A DNA stretch of 64,000 bases, taken from assembly GCA_965240325.2 (NCBI GenBank), contig OZ251240.1, forward strand, positions 434,001 through 498,000, in the 5' to 3' direction. Positions 3,965 to 55,789 of the stretch are shown piece after piece; the first letter of the stretch is position 1; each line of letters starts with the position of its first letter. Both the position numbers and the translations under genes were made by a program. The stretch comes from Rebecca billardiae RCC1528 (lineage: Eukaryota > Protista > Haptophyta). Under the pieces are notes generated by a model. It was given only the letters and a program-made list of their open reading frames with translations, did no database searches and was not told the origin of the DNA.

Positions 3965-5929
3965 TCATCGGCCGGCCGGCGCCTCCGCCGCGCCTGCGCC
4001 CGCGCCCTGCTGCTGCGCCTGCCGCGCGCGCCGCGACTCGAGCGCCCATCGCGCCACGTGCTCGGCGCGCAGCGCGCCGCGCTCGCGCGCGCACTCGTGC
4101 CGCACGGCCTCCGCCGCGTCGAGCACGCCGTGCTTGTACTCGGCGATCGTGCCGAACCGCTCGGCCATCTGCCGCCGCGCCAGCCGCCGCTGCCGCTCCG
4201 CGATCGCCTCCGCCTGCCGCCTGTTCGGGTGCTCGGTGCGCGCCTCGCCCGAGCCCAGGTGGAAGTAGTACGGCGCGCGCGTCTGCGGGTGGATCTGCGG
4301 GATCCAGTCGGAGGAGAGCGGGCGGTTGAGCACCGCCTTGCGCATCTTCGCCTCCCACTCGGCGAACGCGCGCTGCGGCGCGGCGCGCGCGCGCGGGCGG
4401 GGGCACATGAGCGCGCGCCGCGCGGCGCGGCGCTCGCGGCACGTCACGCGGCGGAGGTTGGAACCCAAGGGCGCGGCGCTCGCGGCACGTCATGCGGCGG
4501 AGGTTGGAACCCAAGGGCGCGGCGCTCGCGGCACGTCATGCGGCGGAGGTTGGGACCGAAGGGCGCGGGCGGCGATGCGGCGCGCCGCGCGCCGCACCTC
4601 GAAGCGCGAGCGCTCGCGGCGGAGCTCGGCGTCGATCGCGTCCGCCTCGACGCCCGCGTGCAGCCGCACGGCCAGTTCGCGCCTCGCCACCGCGTCCGCC
4701 TCCGCGTGCTCCGCGCACCACAGCGCCCAGCGCGCGCGCGCCGCCCTCGCCTCGCGATGCGAGCGCAGCCGGCTCAGGCTGCGGGCGCGCGCGCGCGCGG
4801 ACGCGCCTCGCGCGTACCGCTGCAGCGTGAGGACCTCGGGCCCGCCGCGGCGTGCGCGCACGCGGCGCCTCGCCGCGCGGCCGCGCGCGATCGCCTGCAC
4901 GAGCACCGCCGCGCGCCAGCGCAACAGCTCGAGCAGCGCCGCGGCGCTCGGCGGCGCCGCGTGCGCGCGCGCAACGACACGATGCCACGCGCGCGCGCGC
5001 TCGGCCGCGGCGCTCGCCGCGGTGCCGCGCGCGGCGCGCGCGCGCGCGAGGCGCTCGCGCGAGGCGGCGAGCACGCGCCAGCGCCAGCCGAGCGCGCGCG
5101 CGATACGTCGGCCCGCCCCTCGCTGCCGCAGCCGCTGCAGCTGCGCCTCGCGCCGCTGCGTGCGCGCGCGCGCGAGCGCGCGCCGCGCGAGCGCCGCGCG
5201 CGCGGCTCGCTGCAGCGTGCGCGCGGCCGCCTCGCGCCGCGCGTGCTCGCGCGCGCGCAGCCGCGAGCGGACGAAGGCGTCGAGGTCCTCCGCCGGCGCG
5301 GCGCGCGGCCCCGCGCCAGCCGCGACCCCCGACACGCCGCGGCTCGACGCCCGCACCGCGCCGCTCTCGCCGCCCTCGCCGCCCGCGCCGCCCTCGCCGA
5401 TGACGCGCGCCGTGGCCTCTAGCAGTGCAAGCCGGTGGCCGAGCGCGGCGCTCGGACCGTCGACGGCGGCGCGGAGCGCGCGGAGCGAGCCGCCCTCGCC
5501 CGCGCTCAGCCCAGTCGCGGGCGCGTGCGCCGCCGCGCGCACGCGCTGCGCGACGTCGGCGTGCTCGCGCGCCAGGGCCAGCTGCCACGGCTGCGCGCGC
5601 TTCGGCAGCGAGCCAGCGGCTAGCTTCGCATCCAGAGCCATCCGCTCGGCGCACGCGTCGAGCAGCGCGCGCACGGAGGACTCGCCGAGGCCGGCGGTGA
5701 CGCGCTCGACCCCCTCGAACACCGCCGCCGTGCGCATCGCGCGCCACTCGTCGCGCAGCGAGCACTCGACCGCGAGGCGGCGCACGAGCGGCGCGGCCTC
5801 GCGCCCGCGCGACTCGACCGCCTGCTGCACCTCGGCGAGGAGGCGCAGGTCCTCGGCGCGGGAGGTGCCGATGCGGGTGAGCTCCTCCAGCGTCGCCTTG
5901 CACGCGACGGCGAGCTGGTGGTCGGGCAT
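3965..5929 (-). CDS. IQ-motif and WW-domain protein; exons 5929-4598 and 4372-3965
   Basis: IQ-like motifs AARTLQRAARAAL, AVLVQAIARGRAARRR and VLTLQRYARG. WW-like segment DWIPQIHPQTRAPYYFHLGSGEARTEHP. A phase-0 GT..AG intron (4597-4373) joins ORFs 4490..5929 and 3965..4468 in frame. Confidence 0.75.
4426..4565. repeat. Intronic minisatellite, ~3 copies of a ~47-bp unit
   Basis: gcggcgctcgcggcacgtcaygcggcggaggttggaacccaagggc occurs three times inside the predicted intron. Confidence 0.85.
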
Positions 5930-11035: not shown

Positions 11036-11676
11036 GGAGTCACGCGGCCGCTTTTCACGCGCACTCTGCGTGAGATTCCCAACCTGTGTCCTGTGCTGCC
11101 CTTGAGTATCTCGCCTTTGCTCGCCTACCTGAGCTGTGTGCGTCTCTGATAATAGTGCTTACCCCCATAGTAACGTAGATTGCGAGCAGCCGCAGACATC
11201 GACGTAACGTTTCAGACGATGATGATGATGATCTCGGCCCTTGGCTTGGATGATCCCGCGAGCCTGCAGAATCTCGGCGCGGATGACAATGGCGATACAG
11301 TAGCGATGCTGATCATGCGACGGAACGCTCACAGACGACACAATCATCAGCACCTGCTACAGGGCCGCCCCATTATAGCTGTCAGGTTTACCCAGAGCGC
11401 GCGGAGTTGAAGATTCATCGTTTTTGTCAAAACTGGGCGCAAGTCAGGTCTTCCTGCCGGCGGATCGCGTGATGGCAGAAGGAGCGCTGCAGCGGCGCCT
11501 TCTCCCCTGGGCGACCCGGCGCGGCGCGCGCGCGGCTGCGACTCTGCGCTCGCGATCGACCCGTACGACAGCCGCACCGGACTCGCTGCGCCCCTTGGCT
11601 CGCTTGCCCACAGAGCGCCGCGCGGACCTGGCATGCGGGCCGCGGGCCATGCCTGAGGTACCAATCATCATCAAGT

Positions 11677-11830
11677 TTGTGCGACATTCAGGGCGGCGAG
11701 GTCGGCACCGTCGACGAGTAGGATGTGTTCTTTGACATCCGCACGTCCCACGCGGATGTCCGAAAGATCGAGCGGCGTCGGAGCGGCCGGCGGGGACCGC
11801 GACCTCGACGACGCTGTGAATGTCGCACAA
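11677..11830. mobile_element. MITE-like inverted-repeat element (~155 bp)
   Basis: ttgtgcgacattca (11677-11690) is the exact reverse complement of tgaatgtcgcacaa (11817-11830). Inner hairpin gacatccgc/gcggatgtc at 11734-11760. Confidence 0.5.
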
Positions 11831-12176
11831 TAAATTCGCGCACGTGGGCCGTGGGCACGTCGGCACCGGTGATGGCGCTGCCTGCTGTCAGTTATAGTGG
11901 GTTGTTGACCCTAGCTTTATATTATTATTACGGCTACAGGCGCTACAGCCGCTACAGCATCACGGAGCACTCCGCGCAGCCGGGACCCGCGGCGCCGAGT
12001 GGCGAGTGGCGCCGTGGCCGAGTGCCAGGCGAGTGACCTCAAGCGACCGAGACATGCCGCGAGTCGACAGACAACACTCGCCACACTGACGACAGTCCCT
12101 GCTGCCTCCCGCCGCATGGCCCTAGCCACTCCTAGTCGAAGTGCTGCCCGCCCTCGTCACCCATGGGCATGAGTAG

Positions 12177-14673
12177 TCATGGTGCCGTCGCACGGGCGGC
12201 TGACGATTCGCTCGGCGCCGGCGGTGCCGTGCTGTCGTCCGCGCCGCCGCCCCGCGCGCCGCTGCCGCCCCCCGTGAGCGCGCGCCGCTCGCGCCTGCGC
12301 TCGAGCGCATCGCGCACCCCGGCGCGCGGCTCGCCCGGCGGAGGCGGCGGCTGCACGGGTGGCGCGCTCGGCGGTTCGCCCGCCGTTGGGGTCGGCGGCG
12401 GCGGCGGCGCGGGCCCGCCCGCGGCGCGCTCTGTCGCCGCCGCCGCCTGCGCGTGTCGCGCCGCCCGGCGCGCGCGCCGCGCGCGCCCGCCCTCGAGCCC
12501 GCGCGCATAGTCGGCGCCCGCCGTGCCGGCCTCGACCAGCCGGTGCGACGGCTCGTACCAGCGCAGGTCGGGCTCGCGCGGCGGCTGCTCCTCCTCCTCG
12601 CGCCCGCGCGCGCTCCCGTAGTCAACCGGCGCGCGCGCGCGCGCGCGCAGCAGCTCGTCGCTCGGCTCGAGCGCCAGCCCGTCCGCGCCGGCGCCGGCGC
12701 GCGCGGCCGCCTCGGGCGGCGGGCGCGCGCGCTGCAGCTCGAACGGCACGGGGCGGGGCGGCGAGTGCGCGGGGCGGTGTCCGGGCTGCGCGTGCAGCAC
12801 CTCGCCCTCAGGCAAGGGGTGCGCGCGCGCCTCCTCCGCCCCGCGCGCGCCGCCTCGGCCAAAGCCCACAGCAACGGCCGCCGGGCGCGTGAGCGCATCG
12901 CTCGGCTCCAGCGCCGGCCGCACCGCCCCCACCGGCCCGGCCGCGCCGCCGTCGCCGATTCCACCGCCCGCGCCGTCGTCGTCGGCGCGGCCGGGTGCGC
13001 GAGCCATGTCGACGGGCGCGGGCGCGCGCGGCCGCGTGGGGAGGTCGTCTGAGGCGGTGGGCAGCGCGCGGCCGTCGTCCGCGTGCGCGCCGCCGGCGCC
13101 GTCCGCGCGGCCGAGCTGCATCGCCATCGGCGGCGCGCCCCGCACCGCGCGCCGCGTCGCCGCGTCCGCGTCCGCGCGCGCGTGCGGCAGCAGCGCGCCC
13201 TCGCCGGGCGGCGGCGCCGCGGCCTCTGGTGGCAGCGGCTGGCGGCCCGTCTCGCCGCCGCCGCCGAAGCTCGGCGCGGCGTGCGCGCGCTCCACCTGCG
13301 CATGCGACACGTCGAGGTGCGCCAGCGCTCCCGCCTCGAGCAGCTCGGCCGCGCCGCCGCCCGGCGCGGCCCCGCGCGCGCGCCCCGCCTCGGTCGCGAA
13401 CGCGTGCGCCGGCGCGCGCGGCCGCGTGTGCGCGTGCGCAGCGGCAAGGTCGTAGTGCGCGTGCGCCGCCTCGTCCGCCTCGGCGAGGGTGGCGTCGGCC
13501 GCGTCGCGCCCGAGCTGCAGCTCGAAGGGTACGCCGCCGCCGCCGCCGCCCGCGCGCCGCCCCTCTCCGCCGCGCCCCAGCCAGAGCAGCTCGCCAGCGC
13601 CGACGAGCGGCGGCGGCGGCGGCGCGCCCGGCGCGGCGGGCGCGAGCGCGGCCGCGCCGCCGCCGCCGTCCGAGCGCCCGCTGTGCGCGCTGCCGAAGAC
13701 GACGTTGGGCGGCGCGGGGTGGAGCAGCGCGTGCTGCGGCTCGAGCACGAGGCGCACGCCCTCCACCGCCGCCGCGCCCTCCTCCGCCCCGCCGCCACGC
13801 CCCGTCTCCGCGCGCCCGAACGCGTGCGCCTCCGCGCGCGGACGCACCGCGCCCACCGCGTGCTCATACGTGCCTGGGCCGGGAGCGGCCGCGGCGGCCG
13901 CGTCGGCGTCGAGCTCGACGAAGCGCGGCGCGGCGTGGGCGAAGCGCGAGACGCCGCGCGCCGCGCGCAGCCGCGTCGGCCGCTCATCCGGCTCGAGCCA
14001 CAGCAGCTCCGCGCCCTCGCCCAGCGCGCGCAGCAGCGCCCACACCAGCGCGCCGTCCGCGCCGAGGCCGCGCGCGGCGCCGTTGTCCGCGGCGCGCGCC
14101 GCGTCGCGCGCGCGCGCAAAGGCGTGCGCGCGCGCGTGCGACTCGACGAGCGCCCAGCGCACGCTGTACGAGAGGTCTGCGGTGAGCGGGCGCGCCGCGC
14201 CGCGCGCCGCGCGCGCCGCCATCCTCGCCCACGGCAGCACGCCGCGCGCGCGCGCCCAAGCCGCGTCGGCCGCGCCGCGCGGCGGCGGCGGCGCGAGCGC
14301 CGACAGGGCGAGGGCGGTGGCGCGCGCGCGAGAGACGGCGGCGGCGCGCGCGCGCTCGGCCTCGGCGGAGGGCCCGACGAGGCGGAAGCCCGGCACGCTC
14401 GGCCGCACCGCGCGCACCGCCGCCGCCACCTGCAGCACGAGCACGGCGCCCGCCGACGCGGCCGCGCGCGCCGCGGCCGCGCGCCTGGCCAGCACCGCCG
14501 GCGGCGCGGCCGCGCCGAGCGCGCCCGCGCCGCGGCCGCGCGCGGCCGCGGTGAGTCTGCCAAAGGGGACGCCGAGCGCGCGCGCGCCGAAGACGAGCAC
14601 GCCGAGCGCCGACGCGCCCGGCTCGCCGGCGCCGCCAAAGTACGCCCCCGGGCCTGGCGTCGCCTCCTGCGCC

Positions 14674-14705
<32 letters not shown>

Positions 14706-17121
14706 TCGAAGCATGATGGCAGCGGGCGCGCGCGGCTTGCCGTATGCGTGGTTGGGCTCAAGCAGATTCACGCCGAGGTCGTAGAGGCCCGGCTTGCGCA
14801 GCGGCGGGTGCGCGGGCCCGAGCAGCGCCGCGCGCGTCGCCATCACCGCGCCGCCGCGCACGCGCGCGCGCACCGCGTCCGCGGGCGCCGCGCGCGCGAG
14901 AGCCGCCGACAGCAGTCGGCCCAGCGCCGCGCCGTAGCGCGCGCGCAGCCGCAGCTCCGCGGCGCTGAGCGGGCGCGCGCGCGGCGCGTGCGCGGGGGCG
15001 CGGGGCGCGATGTGCCCGCCGACGCGCGCCGAGCGCTCCACCAGCGCGTACGACGGCGTGCGCATCGGCGCGCCCTCGCCGCCCTCGCCGCCCTCGCCCG
15101 CGGGGCGGGCGGGCGACGCGGCGCGCGCGGCCGCGCGGCTGAGCACAGCGCCCAGCCCGGCCGTGCGCGCGCGCGCGGTGAAGGGGGGCTCGGGCGGCGG
15201 CGCGGGGGGCGGCGGGGGCGGCGGCTCGTCGGCGCGCGGCGCGCGGGCCTCCTCGCGCCCCGTGCGCGCCGCCCACGCCGGCGCGCGCGCCTCCGCACGC
15301 AGCGCCGCGTCGGACGGCGCGTACGTGGCGGGGCCGGGTGCGCGCGCGGCCGCGGCGGCGCGCGCGCGCGCGGCGAGCGCGCGGCCGCGCGGCGCCGGCG
15401 CGGCCGCGGCGTCGGCCGACGCGTGCGCGCGGCCAAAGGTGGGCGCGGGCACGTGCTTCTCCGCGGGCAGCGCCGGCGCGCCGTACGCGCCGGGCGCGCG
15501 CCGCGCCTCCTCGCGCGCCGCCGCCTCGCGCCGCGCGGCCGCTCGCGCGTCGAGCGCCGCCGGCGGCGCAATCCGAGCGGCGGGCGCGCGCGCTCGCGTC
15601 GAGAGGGCCGCGTCCGCCGGCGCGTCGAGGAGGGCGGTGGAGGCGTCGGAGGCGTCGGTCATCGCGGAGGGCGAGCGGAGCAGCGCCGCCTCCGCCGCCG
15701 CCGCCGCGCGCTCCAGCGCCAGCTCGCGCGCACGCGGCGCCACCTCGCGCTTCGCCTTGGGCCACGCGCCGCCGCGCGAGCGGAGCGCCGCGTCCTCGGC
15801 CGAGCCGGCGCTGCCCGCGCTGCGGCTGCTGCGCACGCTGCTGCCGCCGGCGGAGAGCGCGCTGGTGCTCGCGAGCGCGGGGGCGCGCGGCTCCGGCGCG
15901 AAGCGCGCCGCGCGCCCCATCGCGCCGCCGAGCACGCGGCGCTCCACCTGCGCAAACGACGCCGCCTCCTCCCCCTCCCCCTCAGATGCAGAGGACCGCA
16001 GCTCGGATGCGCCAGAGCCCGCTCCCGGCTCTGATGCCGCCGGCGAGGCGGAGCGCGAGCGGCGCGCGCTGCGAGGGCGCGGCGCGCCGATCGAGTACGC
16101 GGGCGCCACGCGGCGCACAAAGTGCAGCGGCGGCGGCGTGCCCGCCTCGGCCACGGCGTCAGGCGGGCGCGCGGGCGGCGCGCGGCCGCGCAGCGCGGGC
16201 GCGCGCGCAGCCGTCCTCAGAGCGTCCGCGGGCGCCGCCGGCCCGAGCCGCTCCGCCGCGTGCGCCGCGCCGAGGCCGCGCTTGTGCCGCGCGCTGCCGA
16301 GCCGCCGCCGCGCCGCCGCAGACGCCTCCGACTCCGACGGCGGGGCGATGCGCGCGGCGGCCGAGCGCGGGCGCACAGCCCCGTCCCGAGGCGCGCCGTA
16401 CTCGCCCGGGCCGGGCGCGCGCGCCGCCGCCGCCGCGCGCCGCAGCTCCGCCGAGCTCGGCGGCGCGGCCGGCGGCGCGATGCGCGCCGAGAGCACGCGC
16501 GGGCGCACCGCGTCCACGCGCGGCTCGAGCTCGCTCACCGGCTGCTCCTCCGCACCACGCCGCGGCTCGCCGAGGCGCGAGGTGTCGCGCACCTCTCGGC
16601 CAAAGTGAGCCGCTGGCCGGCTCGTGCGCACCGCCGCGTCCGCCTCGGCGACGCGGAGCGGCTCGCCGCCGCTCGCCGGCGGGAGGCGCGAGGGCGCGTC
16701 GTCGCGCTCCGCCCGGCCAAACGGCCCGCCCGCCGGCGCGCACCGACCGCCGAAGCCGTTCATCAACGCGAGCACGTCCGCGCCCGGGCCGAGGCCGGAG
16801 GCAGGCGGCTCGCGCGACGGCGCGTCGTCGCGCTCGGCGCGGCCGAAGGGGCCGCCGGCGGGCACGCGCCGGCTCGGACCGCTCATCAGGGCGCTCACGT
16901 CCACGCCAGGATCGCCCGTCGCCGCGGGATCGCGCGACGGCGCGTCGTCGCGCTCGGCACGCGCAAACGGGCCGCCCGGCGGCCGGCGGTCCGTGGGCGC
17001 GCACGCGCACGGCGCTGAGCGCGGCCCCCGCAGGCAGCAGCAGCAGCACGCCGTGGCAAAATCCGAGCCGAAGAGATCATCGATCGACGGCAGCGCCGCC
17101 GAGGCGAGCGTCTCCACGTGC
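12177..17121 (-). CDS. Large Ala/Arg/Pro-rich protein with SHIPPO/sperm-tail PG-rich repeats (ODF3/STPG-like, probably axonemal)
   Basis: Long ORF with repeated PGPGxY motifs (APGPGEY, APGPATY, TPGPGAY, APGPGTY), recurring FGR/GR motifs and three N-terminal GGPFxRAERDDAPSR repeats. Start codon and possible short introns are uncertain. Confidence 0.7.
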
Positions 17122-17395
17122 ATTGCCCTCCAGCGCCGCGCGTGGCCCGTTGGCGCCGCCCTCCAGCCGCCACAAGCCCAAATTCGAAGCTGGCTCGCGC
17201 GCGCAGCGCTCACCCAACTTTTTCAAGTGTGAACTTTCCCGTCCTCAAGGATTATTTTGGGAAACTCGGAAAATGAGACGAAAATCAAAATCCGCTGCTG
17301 GCGCCTGCTGCGTTCGCGTCCACAGCCATCCGCCGCGAGGCGCCGCCTGCTGCCGCGCCGCCGCGGTCGTAGACGTGCACGCGGTGATGGCACAC

Positions 17396-17454
17396 GCGGT
17401 CGGGCAGAGGCATGTCGCCATTCTCGCGGTCGGGCAGAGGCATGTCGCCATTCT
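17396..17454. repeat. Tandem duplication, 2 x 30 bp
   Basis: gcggtcgggcagaggcatgtcgccattct occurs twice in tandem. Confidence 0.85.
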
Positions 17455-18226
17455 GCGCCGCCTTGCGCCGCGCGACTCGCGTCTGACCATCCTCTCCGCG
17501 CCTTGAGCCCGCACGGACGTGTGCGCCGCCTCCGTCCGTCCGACTAACTCACTTCATGTCAGCCGCGCTCAGCGCTGCCAGGCGTCCCCGCCGCAAAGTA
17601 CTTCATTTAACGTCGTGGCATGCAACGGGCAGGCGTCAGAGTCAGCAAGCTGTAGCAGTAGATCGGGCAGCAGGGACAAACACCAGGATCAGCGCTCCTC
17701 GCCGTCGTCCCCCCCCCCTCGTAGTCGCCCATCACTCCAGTTCTCTGCGCGCTCAGCGCTGAGCAAGCGGTAGGGGGGTTATGATGCCCGATGTAGCACA
17801 CATGTCTGACATGACCCCCTCTGCCTCCATAGCTGCACGAGTGAAATACAGGCGCCTCGCTGCCAGGGCCAGTGGCCCAGACGGGCAGACCCCTGCCCAG
17901 CTACTGGGCTCGATGACAGTCCCCTCAGTTCCCTTCCCCGCGCAGGGATCGGCTAGTGGCTGGCCCTCTGCCCACACTGGGGCACCCTAGGGGGTGCCCC
18001 TTCTGCCGACTCGGCTGTCAAACTCGATGATCTTGAATTGCAAGGCCGTATTCACTGCTTGTACCTCGGGGACCACCCCACAGTGTTGGGCTCGTATGCT
18101 GTTGGCAATGGCATACCCCCGCCCCCTCTGGAGGCGGGCTGTCCACAGTGGAGTGGTGTCAAGACACTAGGTGTCTCGGTCAGTGGTTTGAGGTTGGGTG
18201 AGGGTGGTGGTTGGTTGGGGGCTGGC

Positions 18227-19622: not shown

Positions 19623-20935
19623 TGGCGGGCCGTAGGTCCGCCCCTTGTAGTGCCCGGGAAAAAGATAAGAAAAAGATCAGAAAAAGAAAATCCTCGCCAA
19701 GAAAAGAAAATCGCCTCGCTCACTACCGGGCGCCCTCGCAGCTCCCACTGGGGACGCTCGGCCGAAAACCATCTGGCGCCTGGCGCGGAGCGCGTGGGCG
19801 GCGCGCGCCGAATCCAACGCCAGCGCGGACATCGTGAGAGGACTCCCGAACGGTGTTTTCGCCCGATTCGCGATTGCTGCCCTCGTCGTCTCGCGTGCAG
19901 GTCGAACGAGGGCCAAAGTCGACGCGTTTGGAGGTACGCTCGGCGCGTCGACACGATCGTGCGACCTGGGGCGGTCCTCGCCCGACTTGCACGTCGAGCG
20001 CTCGCATGAGCCATAGCATCAAGCGCTGCGCACGATGGCCGCCTCGCTCGATTCACCGTCGCGCGTCGGGCTCGGTGCGGAAAGGCCCTCATCACGAGGT
20101 GTCTCGCGGGCGGGAAGCGCCATCCCACGCGACGCAAGATTTGGCGCGGCCTTCTGAACACCATAACCGGAATCCACACACCGGACTATGTATCCAGGTG
20201 CCCCGGTTGGCAAGGTCGGGCGCATGCAAATCCGTTTGCTACGGTCGGTGGCGTTGTCCGGCCTGCATGGCGTCGACGGTGGCCAATGCGACGGAGGGGC
20301 AGCGCAAAGCGGCGTACGACGCGCACTGCACGCACCTGCTGGGTCTGCCGCCGTGGCAGGAATCGCGTCTTCGCGAGTCGGCGACTGAGGCGACAGCGCG
20401 CTATCACCGATCCCAGATGCGCACTGTCCGCGACGAGATGAAACGTCGCGCGTGCAGAATCGCCGCCCCATCCTCCACCATGGCACGGGCGCTGCGGGAC
20501 GAGGCCGACGTCGTGAAGCCGGTGACGCATGCGCTGCGCTTCCTGTGCCTGCTCGAGCAGCGCGTGCCCACCCTCGATCGCGAGTGGCACACGCTCTCGC
20601 ACTGCGCGCGCGCGCACCACCAACAGCTCCTGATACCGCCGAACGTGCGAGTGCCGGACCTGTCGCACGGAGCGGCGAGCGCCGACGAACGCTTGGACCT
20701 GGGCGCGCTGTTGCGCAGCGTGGCGGCCGTGCACGACGCCGACGCGACCTTCGCCGAACCTCGTGCCCGGAGCGGACATTGGCATCCTCGCGACACACGA
20801 TCTCAGCTGGCGGCAGGAGGAGATGCTCTTTCGTCATCCTGCCCGTAAACACGCTAAAAGGCGCGAACCCGCTGGGGAAATATTGCGACAGCACTGGCAC
20901 GGCCCGCCGACCCCCCCGCCCGCCAGGGCACAGTT
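19623..20935 (+). mobile_element. Non-autonomous ~1.3-kb element 'R', copy 1 (no TSD, terminal hairpin; rolling-circle/Helitron-like?)
   Basis: Near-identical to 20950-22271 and homologous to the inverted copy at 55992-57464. Terminal hairpin ggcgggcc-gta-ggtccgcc. Confidence 0.75.
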
Positions 20936-20949
20936 TTTATAAAGGGGAA

Positions 20950-22271
20950 TGGCGGGCCGTAGGTCCGCCCCTTGTAGTGCCCGGGAAAAAGATAAGAAAA
21001 GATAAGAAAAAGAAAATCGCCTCGCCAAGAAAAGAAAATCGCCTCGCTCACTACCGGGCGCCCTCGCAGCTCCCACTGGGGACGCTCGGCCGAAAACCAT
21101 CTGGCGCCTGGCGCGGAGCGCGTGGGCGGCGCGCGCCGAATCCAACGCCGGCGCGGACATCGTGAGAGGACTCCCGAACGGTGTTTTCGCCCGATTCGCG
21201 ATTGCTGCCCTCGTCGTCTCGCGTGCAGGTCGAACGAGGGCCAAAGTCGACGCGTTTGGAGGTACGCTCGGCGCGTCGACACGATCGTGCGACCTGGGGC
21301 GGTCCTCGCCCGACTTGCACGTCGAGCGCTCGCACGAGCCATAGCATCAAGCGCTGCGCACGATGGCCGCCTCGCTCGATTCACCGTCGCGCGTCGGGCT
21401 CGGTGCGGAAAGGCCCTCATCACGAGGTGTCTCGCGGGCGGGAAGCGCCATCCCACGCGACGCAAGATTTGGCGCGGCCTTCTGAACACCATAACCGGAA
21501 TCCACACACCGGACTATCGCGTGCCCCGGTTGGCAAGGTCGGGCGCATGCAAATCCGTTTGCTACGGTCGGTGGCGTTGTCCGGCCTGCATGGCGTCGAC
21601 GGTGGCCAATGCGACGGAGGGGCAGCGCAAAGCGGCGTACGACGCGCACTGCACGCACCTGCTGGGTCTGCCGCCGTGGCAGGAATCGCGTCTTCGCGAG
21701 TCGGCGACTGAGGCGACAGCGCGCTATCACCGATCCCAGATGCGCACTAACCCTAGCACTGTCCGCGACGAGATGAAACGTCGCGCGTGCAGAATCGCCG
21801 CCCCATCCTCCACCATGGCACGGGCGCTGCGGGACGAGGCCGACGTCGTGAAGCCGGTGACGCATGCGCTGCGCTTCCTGTGCCTGCTCGAGCAGCTCGT
21901 GCCCACCCTCGATCGCGAGTGGCACACGCTCTCGCACTGCGCGCGCGCGCACCACCAACAGCTCCTGATACTGCCGAACGTGCGAGTGCCAGACCTGTCG
22001 CACGGAGCGGCGAGCGCCGACGAACGCTTGGACCTGGACGCGCTGTTGCGCAGCGTGGCGGCCGTGCACGACGCCGACGCGACCTTCGCCGAACCTCGTG
22101 CCCGGAGCGGACATTGGCATCCTCGCGACACACGATCTCAGCTGGCGGCAGGAGGAGATGCTCTTTCGTCATCCTGCCCGTAAAAACGCTAAAAGGCGCG
22201 AACCCGCTGGGGAAATATTGCGACAGCACTGGCACGGCCCGCCGACCCCCCCCGCCCGCCAGGGCACAGTT
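20950..22271 (+). mobile_element. Element 'R', copy 2
   Basis: Near-identical to copy 1. Inserted at ggggaa|tttaaaaaac relative to the empty site at ~18287-18302, with no duplication. Confidence 0.75.
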
Positions 22272-42689: not shown

Positions 42690-43751
<1,062 letters not shown>

Positions 43752-44854: not shown

Positions 44855-46040
44855 TCAGTAGCTAAAGTTGAAGCCGACTGTGAGGTGCACCACGACCGAG
44901 CCTGCCGCCAGCAGCAGCAGCACATACAGCAGCGTCTTCCACAGGTCGGCGGAGCGCGCCTTCATCTCCTCGAGCGTCTCCTCGCGAGGCTCGCCGCCGC
45001 GCTCCTCGGGCGTCGGCGGCAAGCCCGGCGCGCGCGCCTTGCTCGGGCTGGCGAACTGGCAGCGTGCGCGCGCGCAGGGCGTGCACACGCAGCAGCATGG
45101 AGGTGGCGGGCGCGGGGGGGGAGCGGTGTGCGCGTGAGCGCCTGGCAGGGCGAGCCAACGCATGTGGGCACGCGCGCGCGCGCGCGCCCGCACGTCAGTA
45201 TCGACCGCGCGATCGCAGATGCTCTCCGCCTTCCTCTCGAGCGCCTCGCACGTGCGCTCGGCGTGCCTCTCCTGGCATTTGCACTCGCCCGTGAGCCACT
45301 CGATGAACGCGGTCTGCGAGCGGCCCATCGCGAGGTAGAGGCCGAGGAGCTGCACGGGCGTGGGCGTCTGCTTCGGTGTGGCCTCACCCATCTTCGCCTT
45401 CATGCGCCGCTGCACCCTGGGGATCGACGCCTCGCCGATGCCCGGCACCACACTGCGCACGCCGGGAACGGGGCGGGTGCGCACGCTCTCGTGAGCACGG
45501 CGGCAGCGGGGCGCGCAGAGGGACAGCGCGCTGTGACGCGCACCCGGGCGTGAGCTTGGTCATGGATAGCCGCATGCGCTCAAAGTTCTCGAAGACGGTG
45601 GTCGTGCTGCCGTCCGCTTTCTTCGCCGGGCTCGTGTCGTGCTTGGCGTCCGTGCAGTAATCGTGCGACTTCGCCTCGAGCGCGAGCGCGATCTTCTCGG
45701 CGTAGCTGCGCGCGGGGCGCGGCGGCGGTGGATATAAAAAGCGGCGAATGCGCGCGCACGCCTAAGCACCGCGTTCGTGCTGCGCGCGCCGCGCGTGCAT
45801 GCCCGCGCACCGCTTCTGCACGTCCGTCGCGACGAGGAAGGAAATGAATGCGTCGTTGTTACGGTTCAGCAGCAAGTAGTAGCCCATGAGCGCGACGGCC
45901 GAGGTGATCTCGCGCTTGATGAGCTTGTCGCATGTGATCTTGCCCGCCCCTGGCAAGATGCCCGGCGCGAGGAGCTCGGACGACAGTGGCGACCTCTGGA
46001 AGGTCTCGAATACGGCCGTCGGCAGCTCGGTCTGCGCCAT
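44855..46040 (-). CDS. Tandem BAF-like (barrier-to-autointegration factor) domain protein with C-terminal TM anchor, 283 aa; exons 46040-45811, 45705-45544, 45452-45194, 45055-44855
   Basis: Three GT..AG introns give a continuous 852-nt frame. Two mutually similar domains carry (L/V)PG(A/I)G(K/E), L(M/L)GxYL and AFI(S/E)(F/W)L motifs, resembling BAF LAGIGE..VLGQFLVL..FREWL. Terminal hydrophobic helix LLYVLLLLAAGSVVVHLTVGF. Confidence 0.8.
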
Positions 46041-46250
46041 GTTTTCGCGCGGTCCCAGCTTGCGCTGTCCACGCCCACCGGCACGCACGGTCGGCCGCCG
46101 CCTCCTTGGTCAGCCACTTTCACCGGACCTGGCTGTGAAGACCACTTGGTGGATGCACACCCGGACTTCGCCGGTTCGCGGCGGTTCGCCCATGCATTCC
46201 ACTCATCACGCATTCACGCATCCAGATCTTCCCCTCGTCCTTCCAGACGC

Positions 46251-47834
46251 ATGGTTGACGCCCGCCCCCTTCCCGCCAGGGGGAAACAGCTTGAGAAGCT
46301 GCTCTTCGACTGCCTCGACGTCGCACGCCTGCGCCACGAGCTGAGTTTTGCTCAGGTGCTTATCCCTAAAGGCGCCCGCAAGTGTGAGCTGGCTCATCTG
46401 CTCGCGTGCGCGCTCTCCGGTGCTGCGACGGATGCGGTGCCCAGCACGCCGAGCAGCGCGCACGGAAAGGCGCCCGCGAGGCAGCCGGCCCGCACGAGCA
46501 GGCCCAGAGCGTGTATCGTCGACAGCGGCAGCGATGATGACGCGGAGATGATCACACCTGCGGCCACTGCACTGGCGCGCCGGCGGCAGCGCAGGCGCCT
46601 GCGCAGTCGTCGTGCGTGTGATGACGCCACTCAGGAGGCGGAGGCGGAGGTGGCGGAGGAGGCGGAGGAGGTGGAGGAGCAGGAGGAGGCGGAGGCGCAG
46701 GAGGTTGGCGCCATCAGCCACAGACGGCGCACGCGCGGTCGCCGCATCGTGGACGACAGCAGCGACGATGACGACGGCGGCATCGACCCGCCTGCGCACG
46801 CCGCGGCGCGGCCCAGGCGCACGCGTGCAGACACCAACGGCGGTGGCTTGAAGCGTGACGCCATGCAGCCTGCCGGCCGGCGCCGTCTGCGCCGCCGCCT
46901 CTTTGAGGACAGCGAGAACGACGGCGACGCGAGCGCCCGCGCAAACGCAGCGCGCTCCAAGCGCGGCACTCGCGAGGCGCCCGCACGGAAGCGTCGTGCG
47001 ACGACTGCTGAGCCCGATCCGGCCGAGCCGGTGGGCGGCGGCGACTCGAGCAGCCCCGCGCGTGCCGACAGCGAGGGCGGCGCGGACACCGAGGGCAGCA
47101 CAGAGCCGGAGAGCAGCCATGCAGACTCGGATTACGTGTGCAGCGACTCCGAGGGCGCGGTGACGGCCACCGAGGACGAGGAGGAGGAGGAGGACGAGGA
47201 GGAGGAGGAGGACGAGGAGGCGGCGAGTGCCAGCTCTGAGCTCGGCTCCTGCGGCACCGACTCCGACTCCGACTCCGGGTCCGAACGGAGTGAACCGCAA
47301 GGCGGGAGGCTCTGGTGCTCCTGCTGCCTCCAGGCGTGCCCTGTCGACAACTTCTCGCGCGCGCAGCAGCGCGAGGAGGAGGACGCCGAGCGCTTCTGTC
47401 TGAAGCACACCTCCACCTCGGCCTTCAACGCGCGCGCGGTCACGCGCAACCCCTCCCTGTCCACGGACGGCAGCCAGGCGCACGAGGACCCGCCGCACCC
47501 GCTCTCCCCGGACGAAACCGACGACACGGGCTCCGACGGGCGGGGCGAGGAGGAGGACAGCGTGGGCGGCACGCCTGGCGATGCGAGCAAACACGGCGGA
47601 CCAGCTGCCGGGCCTCATGCCCCGCTGCCCGAGGACGAGGTGATCAACTTTGGCGAGTTCCGCGGCAAGGCGCGCTTCAGCGACATTGCCTCCGAACGGC
47701 GGCAGGGGCACCGACTGTCGCGGTACCGCCGTTACATTCTCGAGCAGAGACCGCCGTTCTTTGCGGCACAGCTTCCCCGGTTCCAAGCATACCTGAATGC
47801 CGTTGCCGCTGGCAGAGCAGTGAGCGGATCCTGA
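46251..47834 (+). CDS. Putative nuclear protein (527 aa): N-terminal HeH/LEM-like domain, basic and acidic disordered tracts, Stc1-like zinc finger, C-terminal FGxxRGK motif
   Basis: LDVARLRHELSFAQVLIPKGARKCELAHLL, NLS-like Arg/Lys clusters, poly-E/D tract, CSCCLQACPVDNFSRAQQ..FCLKH and INFGEFRGK. Confidence 0.7.
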   Translation: MVDARPLPARGKQLEKLLFDCLDVARLRHELSFAQVLIPKGARKCELAHLLACALSGAATDAVPSTPSSAHGKAPARQPARTSRPRACIVDSGSDDDAEMITPAATALARRRQRRRLRSRRACDDATQEAEAEVAEEAEEVEEQEEAEAQEVGAISHRRRTRGRRIVDDSSDDDDGGIDPPAHAAARPRRTRADTNGGGLKRDAMQPAGRRRLRRRLFEDSENDGDASARANAARSKRGTREAPARKRRATTAEPDPAEPVGGGDSSSPARADSEGGADTEGSTEPESSHADSDYVCSDSEGAVTATEDEEEEEDEEEEEDEEAASASSELGSCGTDSDSDSGSERSEPQGGRLWCSCCLQACPVDNFSRAQQREEEDAERFCLKHTSTSAFNARAVTRNPSLSTDGSQAHEDPPHPLSPDETDDTGSDGRGEEEDSVGGTPGDASKHGGPAAGPHAPLPEDEVINFGEFRGKARFSDIASERRQGHRLSRYRRYILEQRPPFFAAQLPRFQAYLNAVAAGRAVSGS

Positions 47835-48067
47835 CGGCGGAGCTGATCCCCGGCTCTCTTCACAGACCGAGCATGTGCCTGTGACCGCTGAACGTGCATA
47901 ACGTAGTACGTACTCACGCGTGCCCGTGGGCGGGCCGCTCGACCTTGCGCCCACCGTGTGTCGGTACATACTACAATGCCGTCCGGCCCTCCCGGACATC
48001 GGCGAACAGCGTCGGCCACGGCCCAAGACCGACTGAGCGAGCGCTGGTGTCAACCGCTTTGCTCAGC

Positions 48068-53157: not shown

Positions 53158-55789
53158 CTAGACATGCAGCACGCGCGCGGGCACGGCCGCGTGCGTCACC
53201 GTCGGCGGTGCCTCGCCCAGCGGCATGGCGACGGCCTGCGCGCGCGCAGGCTGCCCGACCGGCGCGGCGTAGCCATATGCCGGCGGCGTCGCCGCGGGCG
53301 GCACGGCCGCCGTCGAGTGCGCGCCCGAGCGCGGCACGCCGACGAGCGAGCCCATGACGACGGGCAGGGAGGACGCCGCGTGCGCGGGTCCGGCGCTCGG
53401 CGTGTACGGCGGAGGCGGGTCGGCCGAGCTCGCGCCGGCGGCGGCAGCGCCGTTGGCCGGCGCGGGCGGCGCGGCCGACGGCGCTCCCGGCCTGCGGCAG
53501 CAGTTTTGCAGCTTGCCGCGCCGCCGCAGCTGCACGCACACGAGCGCACCCAGCACGCAGCACAGCAGCCCGCCCAGCACGATCAGCACGATCTCGACGC
53601 GCGAGAGCGTGGCGACGGGCTCCTCCGGCGGGCACTCGCGCGCCGAGCCACGGCTGGCGCCGCCGTTGGGCGGCGCGGGCGGCGGGCTGGGCGGCAGCCC
53701 GCCGGCGCGCTGGCTCGGCGGCGGCGCGGGCGGCAGCGTGCTACTGCCGCCGCCGCTCGGGGGCGGGGACGACGCGTCCGGCCCCTCCCTGCGGCACTTG
53801 TTGTCGCAGCCGTCGCCCTCGCGCTGGTTGCCGTCGTCGCACTCCTCGGGCGCCTCGGCGCGCCCGTTGCCGCACGCGCGCTCCCCCGTCTCCAGGCAGC
53901 TCCCGTGCTCGCGCAGGTAGCGGCACATGCTGAAGTCGTCCTCAAACCTCGGGTCCTGCTCGGAGGTGAGCGTGGCCGCCATGATGCCCTTGGCGGAGTG
54001 CGGCGCGCCCAGGTTGTGCCCGATCTCGTGGGCAAAGGTGCGCCAGAGCTTCTCGGTCGAGAGGAAGGTGGTGAGCCCGATGTGCCCCCCGTTGCACAGC
54101 TCGTCGCGCTTGCGGCACTCGCCCTCCGCGTCGTGCGGCGCGGCCGCGTGCCCGTTGGGCAGCCTGAAGTCACACTCGGCGCACCGCTCCTTGCCGTCCT
54201 CGCCCAGCGCGCACTGGCGGCACGGCTCGCCCGTGTCGCGCACGCCGAGCGGCGCGAAGGCGGGGCGGCAGGCGACGCCGATCGCCGCGACGCCGAGCGC
54301 CGCGCCGAACGCGCAGTCGGTGAGCAGGTGCCACACGGCGGGCGCGCCCTGCTCGACCGCGCTGCGGCCGCCCGCCACCTCTGAGCTGAGCCGTTCGCGC
54401 TCGGGCGCGTGCTGCTGCGCCCACACGCCCAGCTCGCTGAGCAGCACGCGGAGGCCGTCGACGCCGACGCGCGTGCGCGCGCCGCCGCTGTCCAGGTCCT
54501 TCGCCCACAGCTCCTGCCGCCCGGGCGAGGCGGGCTCGGCGCACCGGCCGAACGGGCTGTCGGGGCCGCTGAACTCGACGGGCGCGTAGTTGGGGCCCCC
54601 GGCCTCGAACGAGGCGGACTCATCCACGTTCAGCACGAGCGTGTGCGCGGAGATGTACACGCCGAGCTGCTCGGTGTACAGCGCGTTCGCGAGGGAGAGC
54701 ATGTGCGCGATCTCCGCCGTCGATGCGTCCGCGTCGCCGCCTGGGCGCGCGCGGCGAGCGGGCGGTAACCGAGCGCGCGCGTGGGCACGCGCGGACGCGA
54801 CTCGGCGCGCGCGCGCGGCGCACGCGCGCACCGGTGATGTTGACAAACCCTCGATCAGCGAGCAGCCCGATGGGCATGTGCCGCACGACGGGCTGCAGTG
54901 GGCAGTAGCATAGCCGGCCCTCGCGCCCAGGCACGCCCTCGTCGTCCTCCGCCTCCGCCTCCGCCTCCGCCTCCGCCTCCGCCTCCGCCTCCGCCTCCGC
55001 CTCCGCCTCGGCCTCCGCCGCGGCCTGCTCAGCCGGCGCGGGCGAGCGATCGCCGCCGCTGCTGGCGTCTGCCGCCGACAGCCGCCGCGCGTGCGCATCG
55101 GCATGCGAGGCGAGCCCTTCGCGGCGCGCGCGCGACCACCACCCGCCAGCCGCAGCGTGCTCGCCACGCGCCATTGCGCGCGGCGGGGCCCGCCTCGCGC
55201 GCCGTGCGGCCGCAGCGAACGGGTGTGTTGCGGGCACGGGCAGCGCGCCGCTGTGCAGCAGGTATGCCCCGGCCGGCGCCGAGGCGGCCGCGGCGCCGAG
55301 CTGGCGCGCGACGGAGCCGGCAGCAGGGCTGAGCATCATCAGCCGCGAGCCGCCCGTGCGCGCGTCGCGCTCGAGCACGGCGGCACGCACGCTGCCGTCC
55401 GGCGCAAGAGTAGCGCGCGCCCACCCGCCTCCGTCCAGGGTGGCTGCGTACGTGGGCACGATGGGAGCACGAGCGACGCGTGACTCGCCCGCCTCGTTCA
55501 CGACGATGGTCGCGCCCTCGTCGAACACGGCCTCGCGCGCGAGCTCGATGTTTAGGGCGTGCGAGCTGCCCGCCCAGCTGAGCGCAATGCGCGTCGCGCT
55601 CGCGAGTGGCGTGCTCGCGTACAGACTGCCGACTGGCTCGTACGGCGTGAGCGGGCCGACGGGCTGCACGCGCACGTGCTCGGGTAGAAGCACCTCCACC
55701 TCCGCGTCGGCGGCGTCGTCGCCAGCGAGGGCCGGCGCGAGGGCCACGAGCACGGCGAGGCCGGCGAGCGGGGTCTGCAGCGATCGCAT
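53158..55789 (-). CDS. ADAM/reprolysin-like (M12B) membrane metalloprotease with Myxococcus-type Cys-rich repeat; exons 55789-54832 and 54740-53158
   Basis: Signal peptide, HEIGHNLGAPH zinc motif with GIM Met-turn, CGNGRAEAPEECDDGNQREGDGCDNKC, TM helix, PPPPY tail and (EA)n tract. Phase-1 intron 54831-54741. Confidence 0.9.

Follow-up and report, generated by a model that had tools for sequence, protein, structure and literature searches.

A Divergent Gene Pair in Rebecca billardiae

The DNA analysed here, 64,000 nucleotides from the haptophyte Rebecca billardiae RCC1528 (contig OZ251240.1, positions 434,001 to 498,000; called the window below, with coordinates counted from its first letter), is GC-rich (60–85%) eukaryotic nuclear DNA with short GT..AG introns and a very high GC content at third codon positions (GC3). 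Identical DNA was found only in Logan assemblies of the runs ERR14847148 and ERR14847152. Between 44855 and 47834 it carries two divergent genes: gene A on the minus strand, which encodes two BAF domains followed by a C-terminal transmembrane (TM) segment, and gene B on the plus strand, whose product lacks such a segment. A preliminary description of this DNA had placed their start codons at 46040 and 46251, 210 bp apart, and this layout is confirmed by the coordinates and by the GC3 frames. In a frame-wise scan, both genes show a GC3 of 0.85–0.97 in precisely the frames proposed for them, and a crude codon-usage scan returns the same segments for both; in the latter scan, gene A is the last of a series of genes on the minus strand and gene B the first of a series on the plus strand. 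The spacer between the start codons presumably serves as a bidirectional promoter and holds both 5′ leaders, and no bacterial-type signals were found in it, as expected of a eukaryote. The parts of gene A and the spacer are as follows.

45811..46040, minus strand: gene A exon 1 (residues 1–76 plus 2 bases); most of BAF domain 1, with the helix-hairpin-helix PGAG
45544..45705, minus strand: gene A exon 2; last helix of BAF domain 1, a linker of ~15 amino acids (aa), and "STTT" plus helix 1 of domain 2
45194..45452, minus strand: gene A exon 3; remainder of BAF domain 2, with the PGIG hairpin, a basic 11-aa insert and the C-terminal helices
44855..45055, minus strand: gene A exon 4 and stop codon; low-complexity tail, conserved LPPTPE motif and tail-anchor TM segment
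46041..46250, no strand: 210-bp spacer between both start codons

Gene A Encodes Two BAF Domains and a Tail Anchor

Gene A runs from the ATG at 46040 to a stop at 44855 on the minus strand and comprises four exons encoding 283 aa, separated by three GT..AG introns with GTGCG donors and CAG acceptors. Its product contains an internal repeat, in which residues 8–94 align with residues 111–210 at 34% identity over 99 aa (E 2e-19). The ends of exon 2 align with the matching parts of the other repeat and with orthologues; the splice model is thus validated internally, since the repeats align and exon 2 supplies its pieces at just the points that the other repeat requires. Intron 3 (45056–45193) is 138 nt long, in frame and free of stop codons, so that the TM segment stays in frame even if this intron is retained.

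Each of the two repeats matches SAM_BAF (PF02961) alone in Pfam. Exon 1 aligns with profile positions 23–65 (E 4.3e-4) and exon 3 with positions 43–83 (E 8.6e-5); taken singly, the exons score 21.1 and 23.4 bits, just below the cut-off of 25, because the introns split the domains. A search of PDB with exon 1 returned BAF chains only (E 0.05), and a single-sequence phmmer search of PDB with domain 2 gave just chance ribosomal matches; the similarity of domain 2 to the BAF chains of PDB is visible at the profile level only.

The only hydrophobic segment of the protein lies at its C-terminus, where the 19-residue Kyte–Doolittle maximum of 2.36 is reached at residues 259–277 of 283. This TM core (44876–44932) ends 6 residues from the C-terminus. 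It is the single TM segment of the protein and falls within the last ~30 residues, and the N-terminus carries no signal sequence. The TM calls, here and throughout, come from the hydropathy scale alone, and by that measure the pattern is the predicted signature of a tail-anchored protein. The notion that the anchor sits on BAF itself, already put forward in the preliminary description, holds, and six homologues of gene A also have a C-terminal TM segment.

A Family of Tandem-BAF Membrane Proteins

An exhaustive HMMER search with gene A exon 1 (E≤0.001) returned 14 proteins, 12 of which are real homologues after removal of the window's own ORF and of P0011, a 759-aa repeat protein that was a false positive and is excluded from the family. 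The homologues fall into the following groups.

P0004 (283 aa), P0005 (291), P0006 (285), P0009 (331), P0014 (341), P0016 (292): two BAF domains and a C-terminal TM segment
P0008: two BAF domains and an N-terminal hydrophobic segment
P0010, P0015: BAF tandem without TM segment, possibly incomplete
P0013: single 95-aa BAF-like protein
P0007 (74-aa fragment), P0012 (273 aa, no TM segment): other matches

P0004, the closest named relative of gene A, is listed as the hypothetical protein KAG8458476.1 in the haptophyte Diacronema lutheri; it is collinear with gene A, with 283 aa, a TM segment at 259–277, an STT at residue 110 and a TPE near 232. The other five proteins of the first group come from other algae or environmental assemblies. 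The distance from the TM segment to the C-terminus is 6 aa in gene A, P0004, P0005 and P0006, and 16–23 aa in P0009, P0014 and P0016.

In a tree of the individual domains, the C-terminally anchored proteins have their first domains in one cluster (support 82/89) and their second domains in another (81/83), and the duplication of the BAF domain therefore predates the split of these lineages. In P0008 (239 aa, from JGI/IMG contigs), the two BAF domains are mutual closest relatives (99/97), which points to a duplication independent of that in the C-terminally anchored family. Tandem BAF domains with a membrane segment thus seem, as judged from the sequences, to have arisen more than once, in a C-terminal-anchor and an N-terminal-TM form. 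The N-terminal segment of P0008 would be a signal peptide or a signal anchor, and its topology, hence its compartment, might differ.

A profile built from 20 domains of the family, including those of the window, matches BAF alone in PDB, over human residues 4–88 (E 4.5e-10). SAM_BAF is matched by 14 of these 20 domains, the best at 8.3e-15, and domain 1 of the D. lutheri orthologue, at 35.5 bits, passes the SAM_BAF cut-off. The AlphaFold2 (AF2) model of this orthologue, P0004, computed with the family alignment, has a mean predicted local distance difference test score (pLDDT) of 84 and a predicted template modelling score (pTM) of 0.72; most 10-residue blocks exceed 90 in both BAF domains, residues 216–243 are disordered, and a confident terminal helix spans 246–279. 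A Foldseek search of PDB with this model placed human BAF in all of the top eight positions (target-normalised TM-score 0.88, root-mean-square deviation 1.5 Å), followed by noise, so that the all-helical BAF fold with its helix-hairpin-helix is found on the orthologue. The PGxG hairpin and the glycine aligned with human Gly47 are invariant across the family. With single domains of only ~95 aa, a pTM of 0.72 over all 283 aa points to confident mutual packing, so that the two BAF domains probably form an intramolecular pseudo-dimer in the model. That gene A encodes two BAF domains and a C-terminal tail anchor, and belongs to a conserved family of this architecture, can be stated with great confidence: the internal repeat, the Pfam matches, the PDB profile match and the fold uphold the two BAF-like domains and the TM tail of the preliminary description.

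The BAF-BAF-TM family is apparently undescribed. A word-indexed homology search with the gene A exon-3 ORF found only the ORF itself, and nothing was found in viral contigs scanned with BAF exon 1, in a metagenome scan with the BAF alignment, or in a PHROGs scan of genes A and B. No mention of BAF together with Emiliania, Phytophthora, Guillardia, Naegleria or Bigelowiella was found among the top-ranked full texts, which lie mostly outside subscription journals. Domain databases will already label the D. lutheri protein as BAF-like, since it passes the Pfam cut-off, and the novelty of gene A is in its architecture and phyletic range, BAF itself being known.

Several further features of the family may be recorded. 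In the otherwise variable linker, ~25 residues ahead of the anchor, an L-x-P/S-T-P-E motif occurs in gene A (residues 229–236, ~45000–45023), P0004, P0005 and P0006, and is a possible proline-directed kinase site by its sequence. In most members, a Thr-Thr(-Thr) motif directly precedes helix 1 of BAF domain 2 (gene A residues 110–118, ~45582–45608), and the N-terminus of the single-domain protein P0013, MTTLVFENF, is reminiscent of MTTSQKHRDF in human BAF. N-terminal phosphorylation frees animal BAF from DNA in mitosis (PMC13443024), and it is a matter of speculation, by analogy, that the Thr-Thr motif of the family corresponds to these mitotic phosphorylation sites. The D. lutheri contig JAGTXO010000051.1 (L003) carries a second, un-annotated BAF-BAF copy at 15500–16300, ~5 kb downstream of the first, and a neighbouring gene of 317 aa is present there in three copies (11387–12340, 16758–17711 and 20453–21300); these repeated genes are a local segmental duplication.

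Gene B Encodes a Protein Predicted to Be Largely Disordered, Without a Recognisable LEM or HeH Domain

The features of gene B are listed below.

46251..47834, plus strand: gene B, a single 527-aa ORF with its first in-frame ATG at 46251
46287..46415, plus strand: helical segment, residues ~13–55, read earlier as HeH/LEM-like; low-confidence AF2 helices
46509–46550, 46740–46784, 46893–46931, plus strand: arginine/acidic repeats, residues ~87–100, 164–178 and 215–227
47301..47411, plus strand: candidate C2-CH zinc knuckle, residues ~351–387, WCSCC...FS..Q...C..H, like the second half of Stc1

The protein is rich in alanine (14%), arginine (12%), glutamate (11%), serine (10%) and aspartate (9%), and its arginine runs resemble nuclear localisation signals. 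The highest 19-residue Kyte–Doolittle window is 1.22, in agreement with the earlier statement that it lacks a TM segment. The GC3 frame is kept along the ORF and is strongest over 47040–47500 (0.90–0.97), and an ORF of 615 aa on the opposite strand (46206–48053) is in the wrong GC3 phase. A single-sequence AF2 model has an overall pLDDT of 48 and is unusable, most of the protein being predicted to be disordered.

The N-terminal region had been described as an HeH/LEM-like motif, and this assignment was not borne out. Neither the whole protein nor residues 1–80 or 10–60 matched any Pfam family at E≤10, LEM (PF03020), HeH (PF12949) and SAP (PF02037) included, and the only match of the N-terminus among PDB sequences was a chance one to an epimerase, with no LEM protein. 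In the single-sequence AF2 model this region has a pLDDT of 41–59, which is uninformative, and HeH/SAP motifs of ~35 aa can escape such tests. Read by eye, which is not a test, the motif has SAP-like spacing and no LEM signature. Of the profile comparisons proposed earlier, the one with BAF thus holds for gene A, and the one with HeH yielded neither a profile nor a structure match.

The Stc1-like finger of the preliminary description survives in part. For the isolated finger piece, Stc1 (PF12898) is the sole Pfam match (E 0.017) and Schizosaccharomyces pombe Stc1 (2LUY) the sole PDB match (E 0.95); the Pfam match is sub-threshold (16.1 bits, cut-off 24.8) and covers positions 49–78 of a profile of 84, in its second half only. 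An Stc1 domain is a tandem LIM-like zinc finger of two C4 modules, and gene B has a single C-x2-C ... C-x2-H set with no upstream module. It is plausible that the sequence forms a single Stc1-type zinc knuckle, which is not an Stc1 domain, and because the echo is sub-threshold and covers half a domain, it carries no implication of RNA interference (RNAi), histone H3 lysine 9 (H3K9) methylation or heterochromatin.

A word-indexed homology search with the whole of gene B gave a low-complexity match only, the same search with its C-terminal region gave nothing at E≤10, and a metagenome scan with the C-terminus gave nothing. Gene B is probably a lineage-specific, largely disordered, nuclear protein. 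Its three arginine/acidic repeats each pass from an arginine run through a hydrophobic pair into an acidic/serine tract (CIVDSGSDDD, RIVDDSSDDDD and RLFEDSENDGD), and their pattern resembles phospho-regulated SUMO-interaction motifs.

Linkage of Genes A and B Is Not Conserved

In D. lutheri (L003), the divergent neighbour of the gene A orthologue, ~110 bp away, is a 162-aa Ctf8-like gene unrelated to gene B, and the other flanking proteins are also unlike gene B. The neighbours of the BAF-BAF-TM gene on contig L004 are a kinesin and a flavokinase, and on L005 and L006 a helicase gene of Sec63/Brr2 type lies upstream on the same strand. A tblastn search with gene B around the BAF genes of L003 and L004 found no relative within 10 kb. 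The neighbours therefore differ in all four of the other loci, and the comparison of synteny in related algae, which the preliminary description had named as a check on the pair, speaks against it. Since D. lutheri has an equally tight, unrelated divergent neighbour, close spacing of divergent genes is a general trait of these genomes, and the caveat raised at the outset, that the adjacency of the two genes could be chance, has proved apt. The pairing is most likely of the ordinary kind found in compact genomes, with a shared bidirectional promoter. A two-gene system of A and B is not supported, and a functional coupling of the two genes is hardly credible.

A Predicted DNA Tether and Its Alternatives

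A mechanism can be proposed for the product of gene A on its own. The two BAF domains of the one chain would pack as the intramolecular equivalent of a BAF homodimer, each keeping the helix-hairpin-helix that binds the backbone of double-stranded DNA, and a disordered linker of ~45 residues would connect the pair to the C-terminal membrane anchor. The protein would be inserted post-translationally into the endoplasmic reticulum (ER) or the nuclear envelope, facing the nucleoplasm or the cytosol, and would itself hold DNA at the membrane or bridge it there. One polypeptide would thus do the job of the animal pair of soluble BAF and a tail-anchored LEM protein (emerin), with no need for a LEM-type adaptor, and gene B would be separate, sharing the short divergent intergenic region with gene A owing to the compactness of the genome. 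DNA binding, a nuclear-envelope location and a tethering role are what we infer for gene A. That it encodes a tail-anchored tandem-BAF protein acting as an adaptor-free DNA tether at the nuclear envelope or ER, uncoupled from gene B, is the account that we somewhat favour. The wider proposal, that algae widely use tail-anchored single-chain BAF dimers to fasten DNA directly to the nuclear envelope or ER, is advanced more tentatively and may well not hold.

Several points weigh against the reading of gene A as an autonomous tether. The evidence for the fold stems from an orthologue that is 36–40% identical and not from the gene A protein itself, the geometry of the putative pseudo-dimer is taken from pTM alone, and localisation, DNA binding and membrane insertion are predictions from sequence and model. 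With respect to gene B, the absence of homologues could reflect a fast-evolving disordered protein rather than a missing partner, short LEM- or HeH-like helix pairs are hard for profiles to detect, and the closest genome in the synteny comparison was that of D. lutheri, at ~40% identity.

The preliminary description had instead treated the two genes as a co-regulated module, in which a soluble HeH/LEM-like gene B product docks on the anchored BAF pair and brings in silenced or foreign DNA by means of its Stc1-like finger. The two genes do lie head to head, with start codons 210 bp apart, gene B looks nuclear by its arginine runs and lack of a TM segment, its N-terminal helices have the SAP-like spacing read by eye, and Stc1 is the sole, sub-threshold echo of its finger in both Pfam and PDB. 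However, no LEM, HeH or SAP profile matches gene B even at E≤10, the BAF-binding LEM domain is Holozoa-specific in published surveys (PMC5630835), and the Stc1 match is half a domain below the cut-off. The linkage is absent from D. lutheri and three other contigs, an unrelated divergent neighbour is equally tight in D. lutheri, and the collections searched yielded no gene B homologue. With these results the module becomes most improbable; nothing supports the idea that gene B, or another soluble protein confined to the lineage, is a partner of the BAF-BAF-TM proteins, and a two-gene system is of no import, gene B being tied to gene A by adjacency alone. A different way of dissolving the pair would be that gene B is not protein-coding at all, its frame being a chance or mis-modelled one in DNA of 69% GC. 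Such very GC-rich DNA yields long ORFs in several frames, among them the 615-aa one on the opposite strand, and the missing homologues, the mostly disordered AF2 model and a weak frame signal over 46320–46900 would fit this explanation. It is nevertheless very unlikely, as the high GC3 of 47040–47500 lies in precisely the frame of gene B while the opposite ORF is out of phase, a codon-usage log-odds segment at 46293–47684 scores like the adjacent real genes, and the Cys/His spacing gives a specific Stc1 echo.

A reasonable alternative for gene A itself, which we nonetheless consider unlikely, is that chromatin tethering is not the main job of the protein. From the ER or the outer nuclear membrane it would face the cytosol and there sense foreign cytoplasmic DNA or form a barrier to it, which would be of relevance in algae that giant DNA viruses attack. 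Animal BAF acts against cytoplasmic viral DNA, the tail anchor would leave the BAF domains exposed to the cytosol or the nucleoplasm, and the DNA-binding hairpin is conserved; known haptophyte viruses are all giant DNA viruses (PMC11953307). Against this role, no defence genes are associated with the BAF-BAF-TM gene in any of the five loci, no relative was found on viral contigs, and the housekeeping-type neighbours fit a constitutive nuclear-envelope role at least equally well.

Other Features of the Window

The neighbouring genes in the window are of housekeeping type, among them those for a DUF5522/diphthamide-synthase-like protein, a CobW GTPase, an aminotransferase, a histidine phosphatase, a glycosyltransferase and a reprolysin-like protease. 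Downstream of gene A, the product of 42693–43751 (minus strand) has both a DUF5522 cysteine motif (E 5.5e-21) and an ATP-binding domain of the diphthamide-synthase (Dph6-like) type, and the ORF at 53161–55335 (minus strand) encodes the reprolysin-like (M12B) metalloprotease with a DUF4215 cysteine-rich repeat. At 7–2922 and 12177–17213 (minus strand), DNA of 82–85% GC contains open frames of great length, one of them 1678 aa, whose codon bias looks like that of coding DNA and which have no Pfam match and contain no tandem repeats at a minimum Tandem Repeats Finder score of 200; these frames are either genes for low-complexity proteins or a compositional artefact. A tandem repeat with a 46-bp unit (3.2 copies, 96% matching) lies at 4424–4568 within a very GC-rich stretch, and no RNA families were found over the whole window with Rfam.

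Relation to Known Systems

Animal BAF is a dimer with two DNA-binding faces that reaches the inner nuclear membrane via tail-anchored LEM proteins (PMC3198171, PMC7285967). Reviews and surveys of the evolution of the nuclear envelope have treated BAF itself, and chromatin tethering by BAF–LEM, as restricted to animals or Holozoa (PMC3198171, PMC5630835, PMC11816917), and a 2025 review holds that BAF and LEM co-evolved (PMC11816917). Haptophytes have lamin homologues (PMC5630835). The algal BAF-BAF-TM family places homologues of BAF well outside animals. If the wider proposal on algae is correct, BAF-based tethering of chromatin to membranes is not a metazoan invention, and the soluble BAF and LEM proteins of animals are one of at least two solutions. 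Gene A would be a natural adaptor-free tether, in which the need for a BAF dimer with two DNA-binding faces at the membrane can be tested, and a candidate for the attachment of haptophyte chromatin to the nuclear envelope or for the rebuilding of that envelope.

The family of gene A shares its fold and homologous sequence with BAF/BANF1 (PF02961; PDB 1CI4, 2BZF and 2ODG), including the PGxG helix-hairpin-helix, the equivalent of Gly47, and the Thr-Thr before helix 1 of domain 2 and of P0013, which may be compared with the MTTSQ of the human protein. The BAF/BANF1 of animals is a soluble protein of ~89 aa that forms a non-covalent homodimer, whereas gene A, whose host is an alga and whose identity to human BAF is ~22%, consists of two fused and diverged copies (34% identical) with an anchor of their own. 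It thus has a different architecture within the homologous BAF family and is not a small, soluble, single-domain protein.

Gene A is laid out like emerin and LAP2beta, with a module directed at chromatin at the N-terminus, a long disordered linker after it and a tail anchor at the C-terminus, and its presumed job of holding chromatin at the nuclear envelope is alike. However, the module of gene A is BAF itself and not a BAF-recruiting LEM domain, there is no sequence relationship, and no LEM domain was detected in gene A or gene B. HeH/LEM-like-MSC proteins are widespread nuclear-envelope proteins outside metazoans that bind DNA directly (PMC5630835), and Src1, Heh1, Heh2, Lem2 and Man1 are functionally the nearest non-animal analogues of a direct membrane–DNA tether. 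These proteins have two TM segments, an MSC domain and bihelical HeH DNA binding, all of which gene A lacks, and gene B is without a TM segment, an MSC domain or a detectable HeH domain. With S. pombe Stc1 (PF12898, 2LUY), residues ~351–387 of gene B share the W-C-x2-C ... F-S-x2-Q ... C pattern of the second zinc module; gene B has half of the tandem finger, and the rest of it is unrelated to Stc1.

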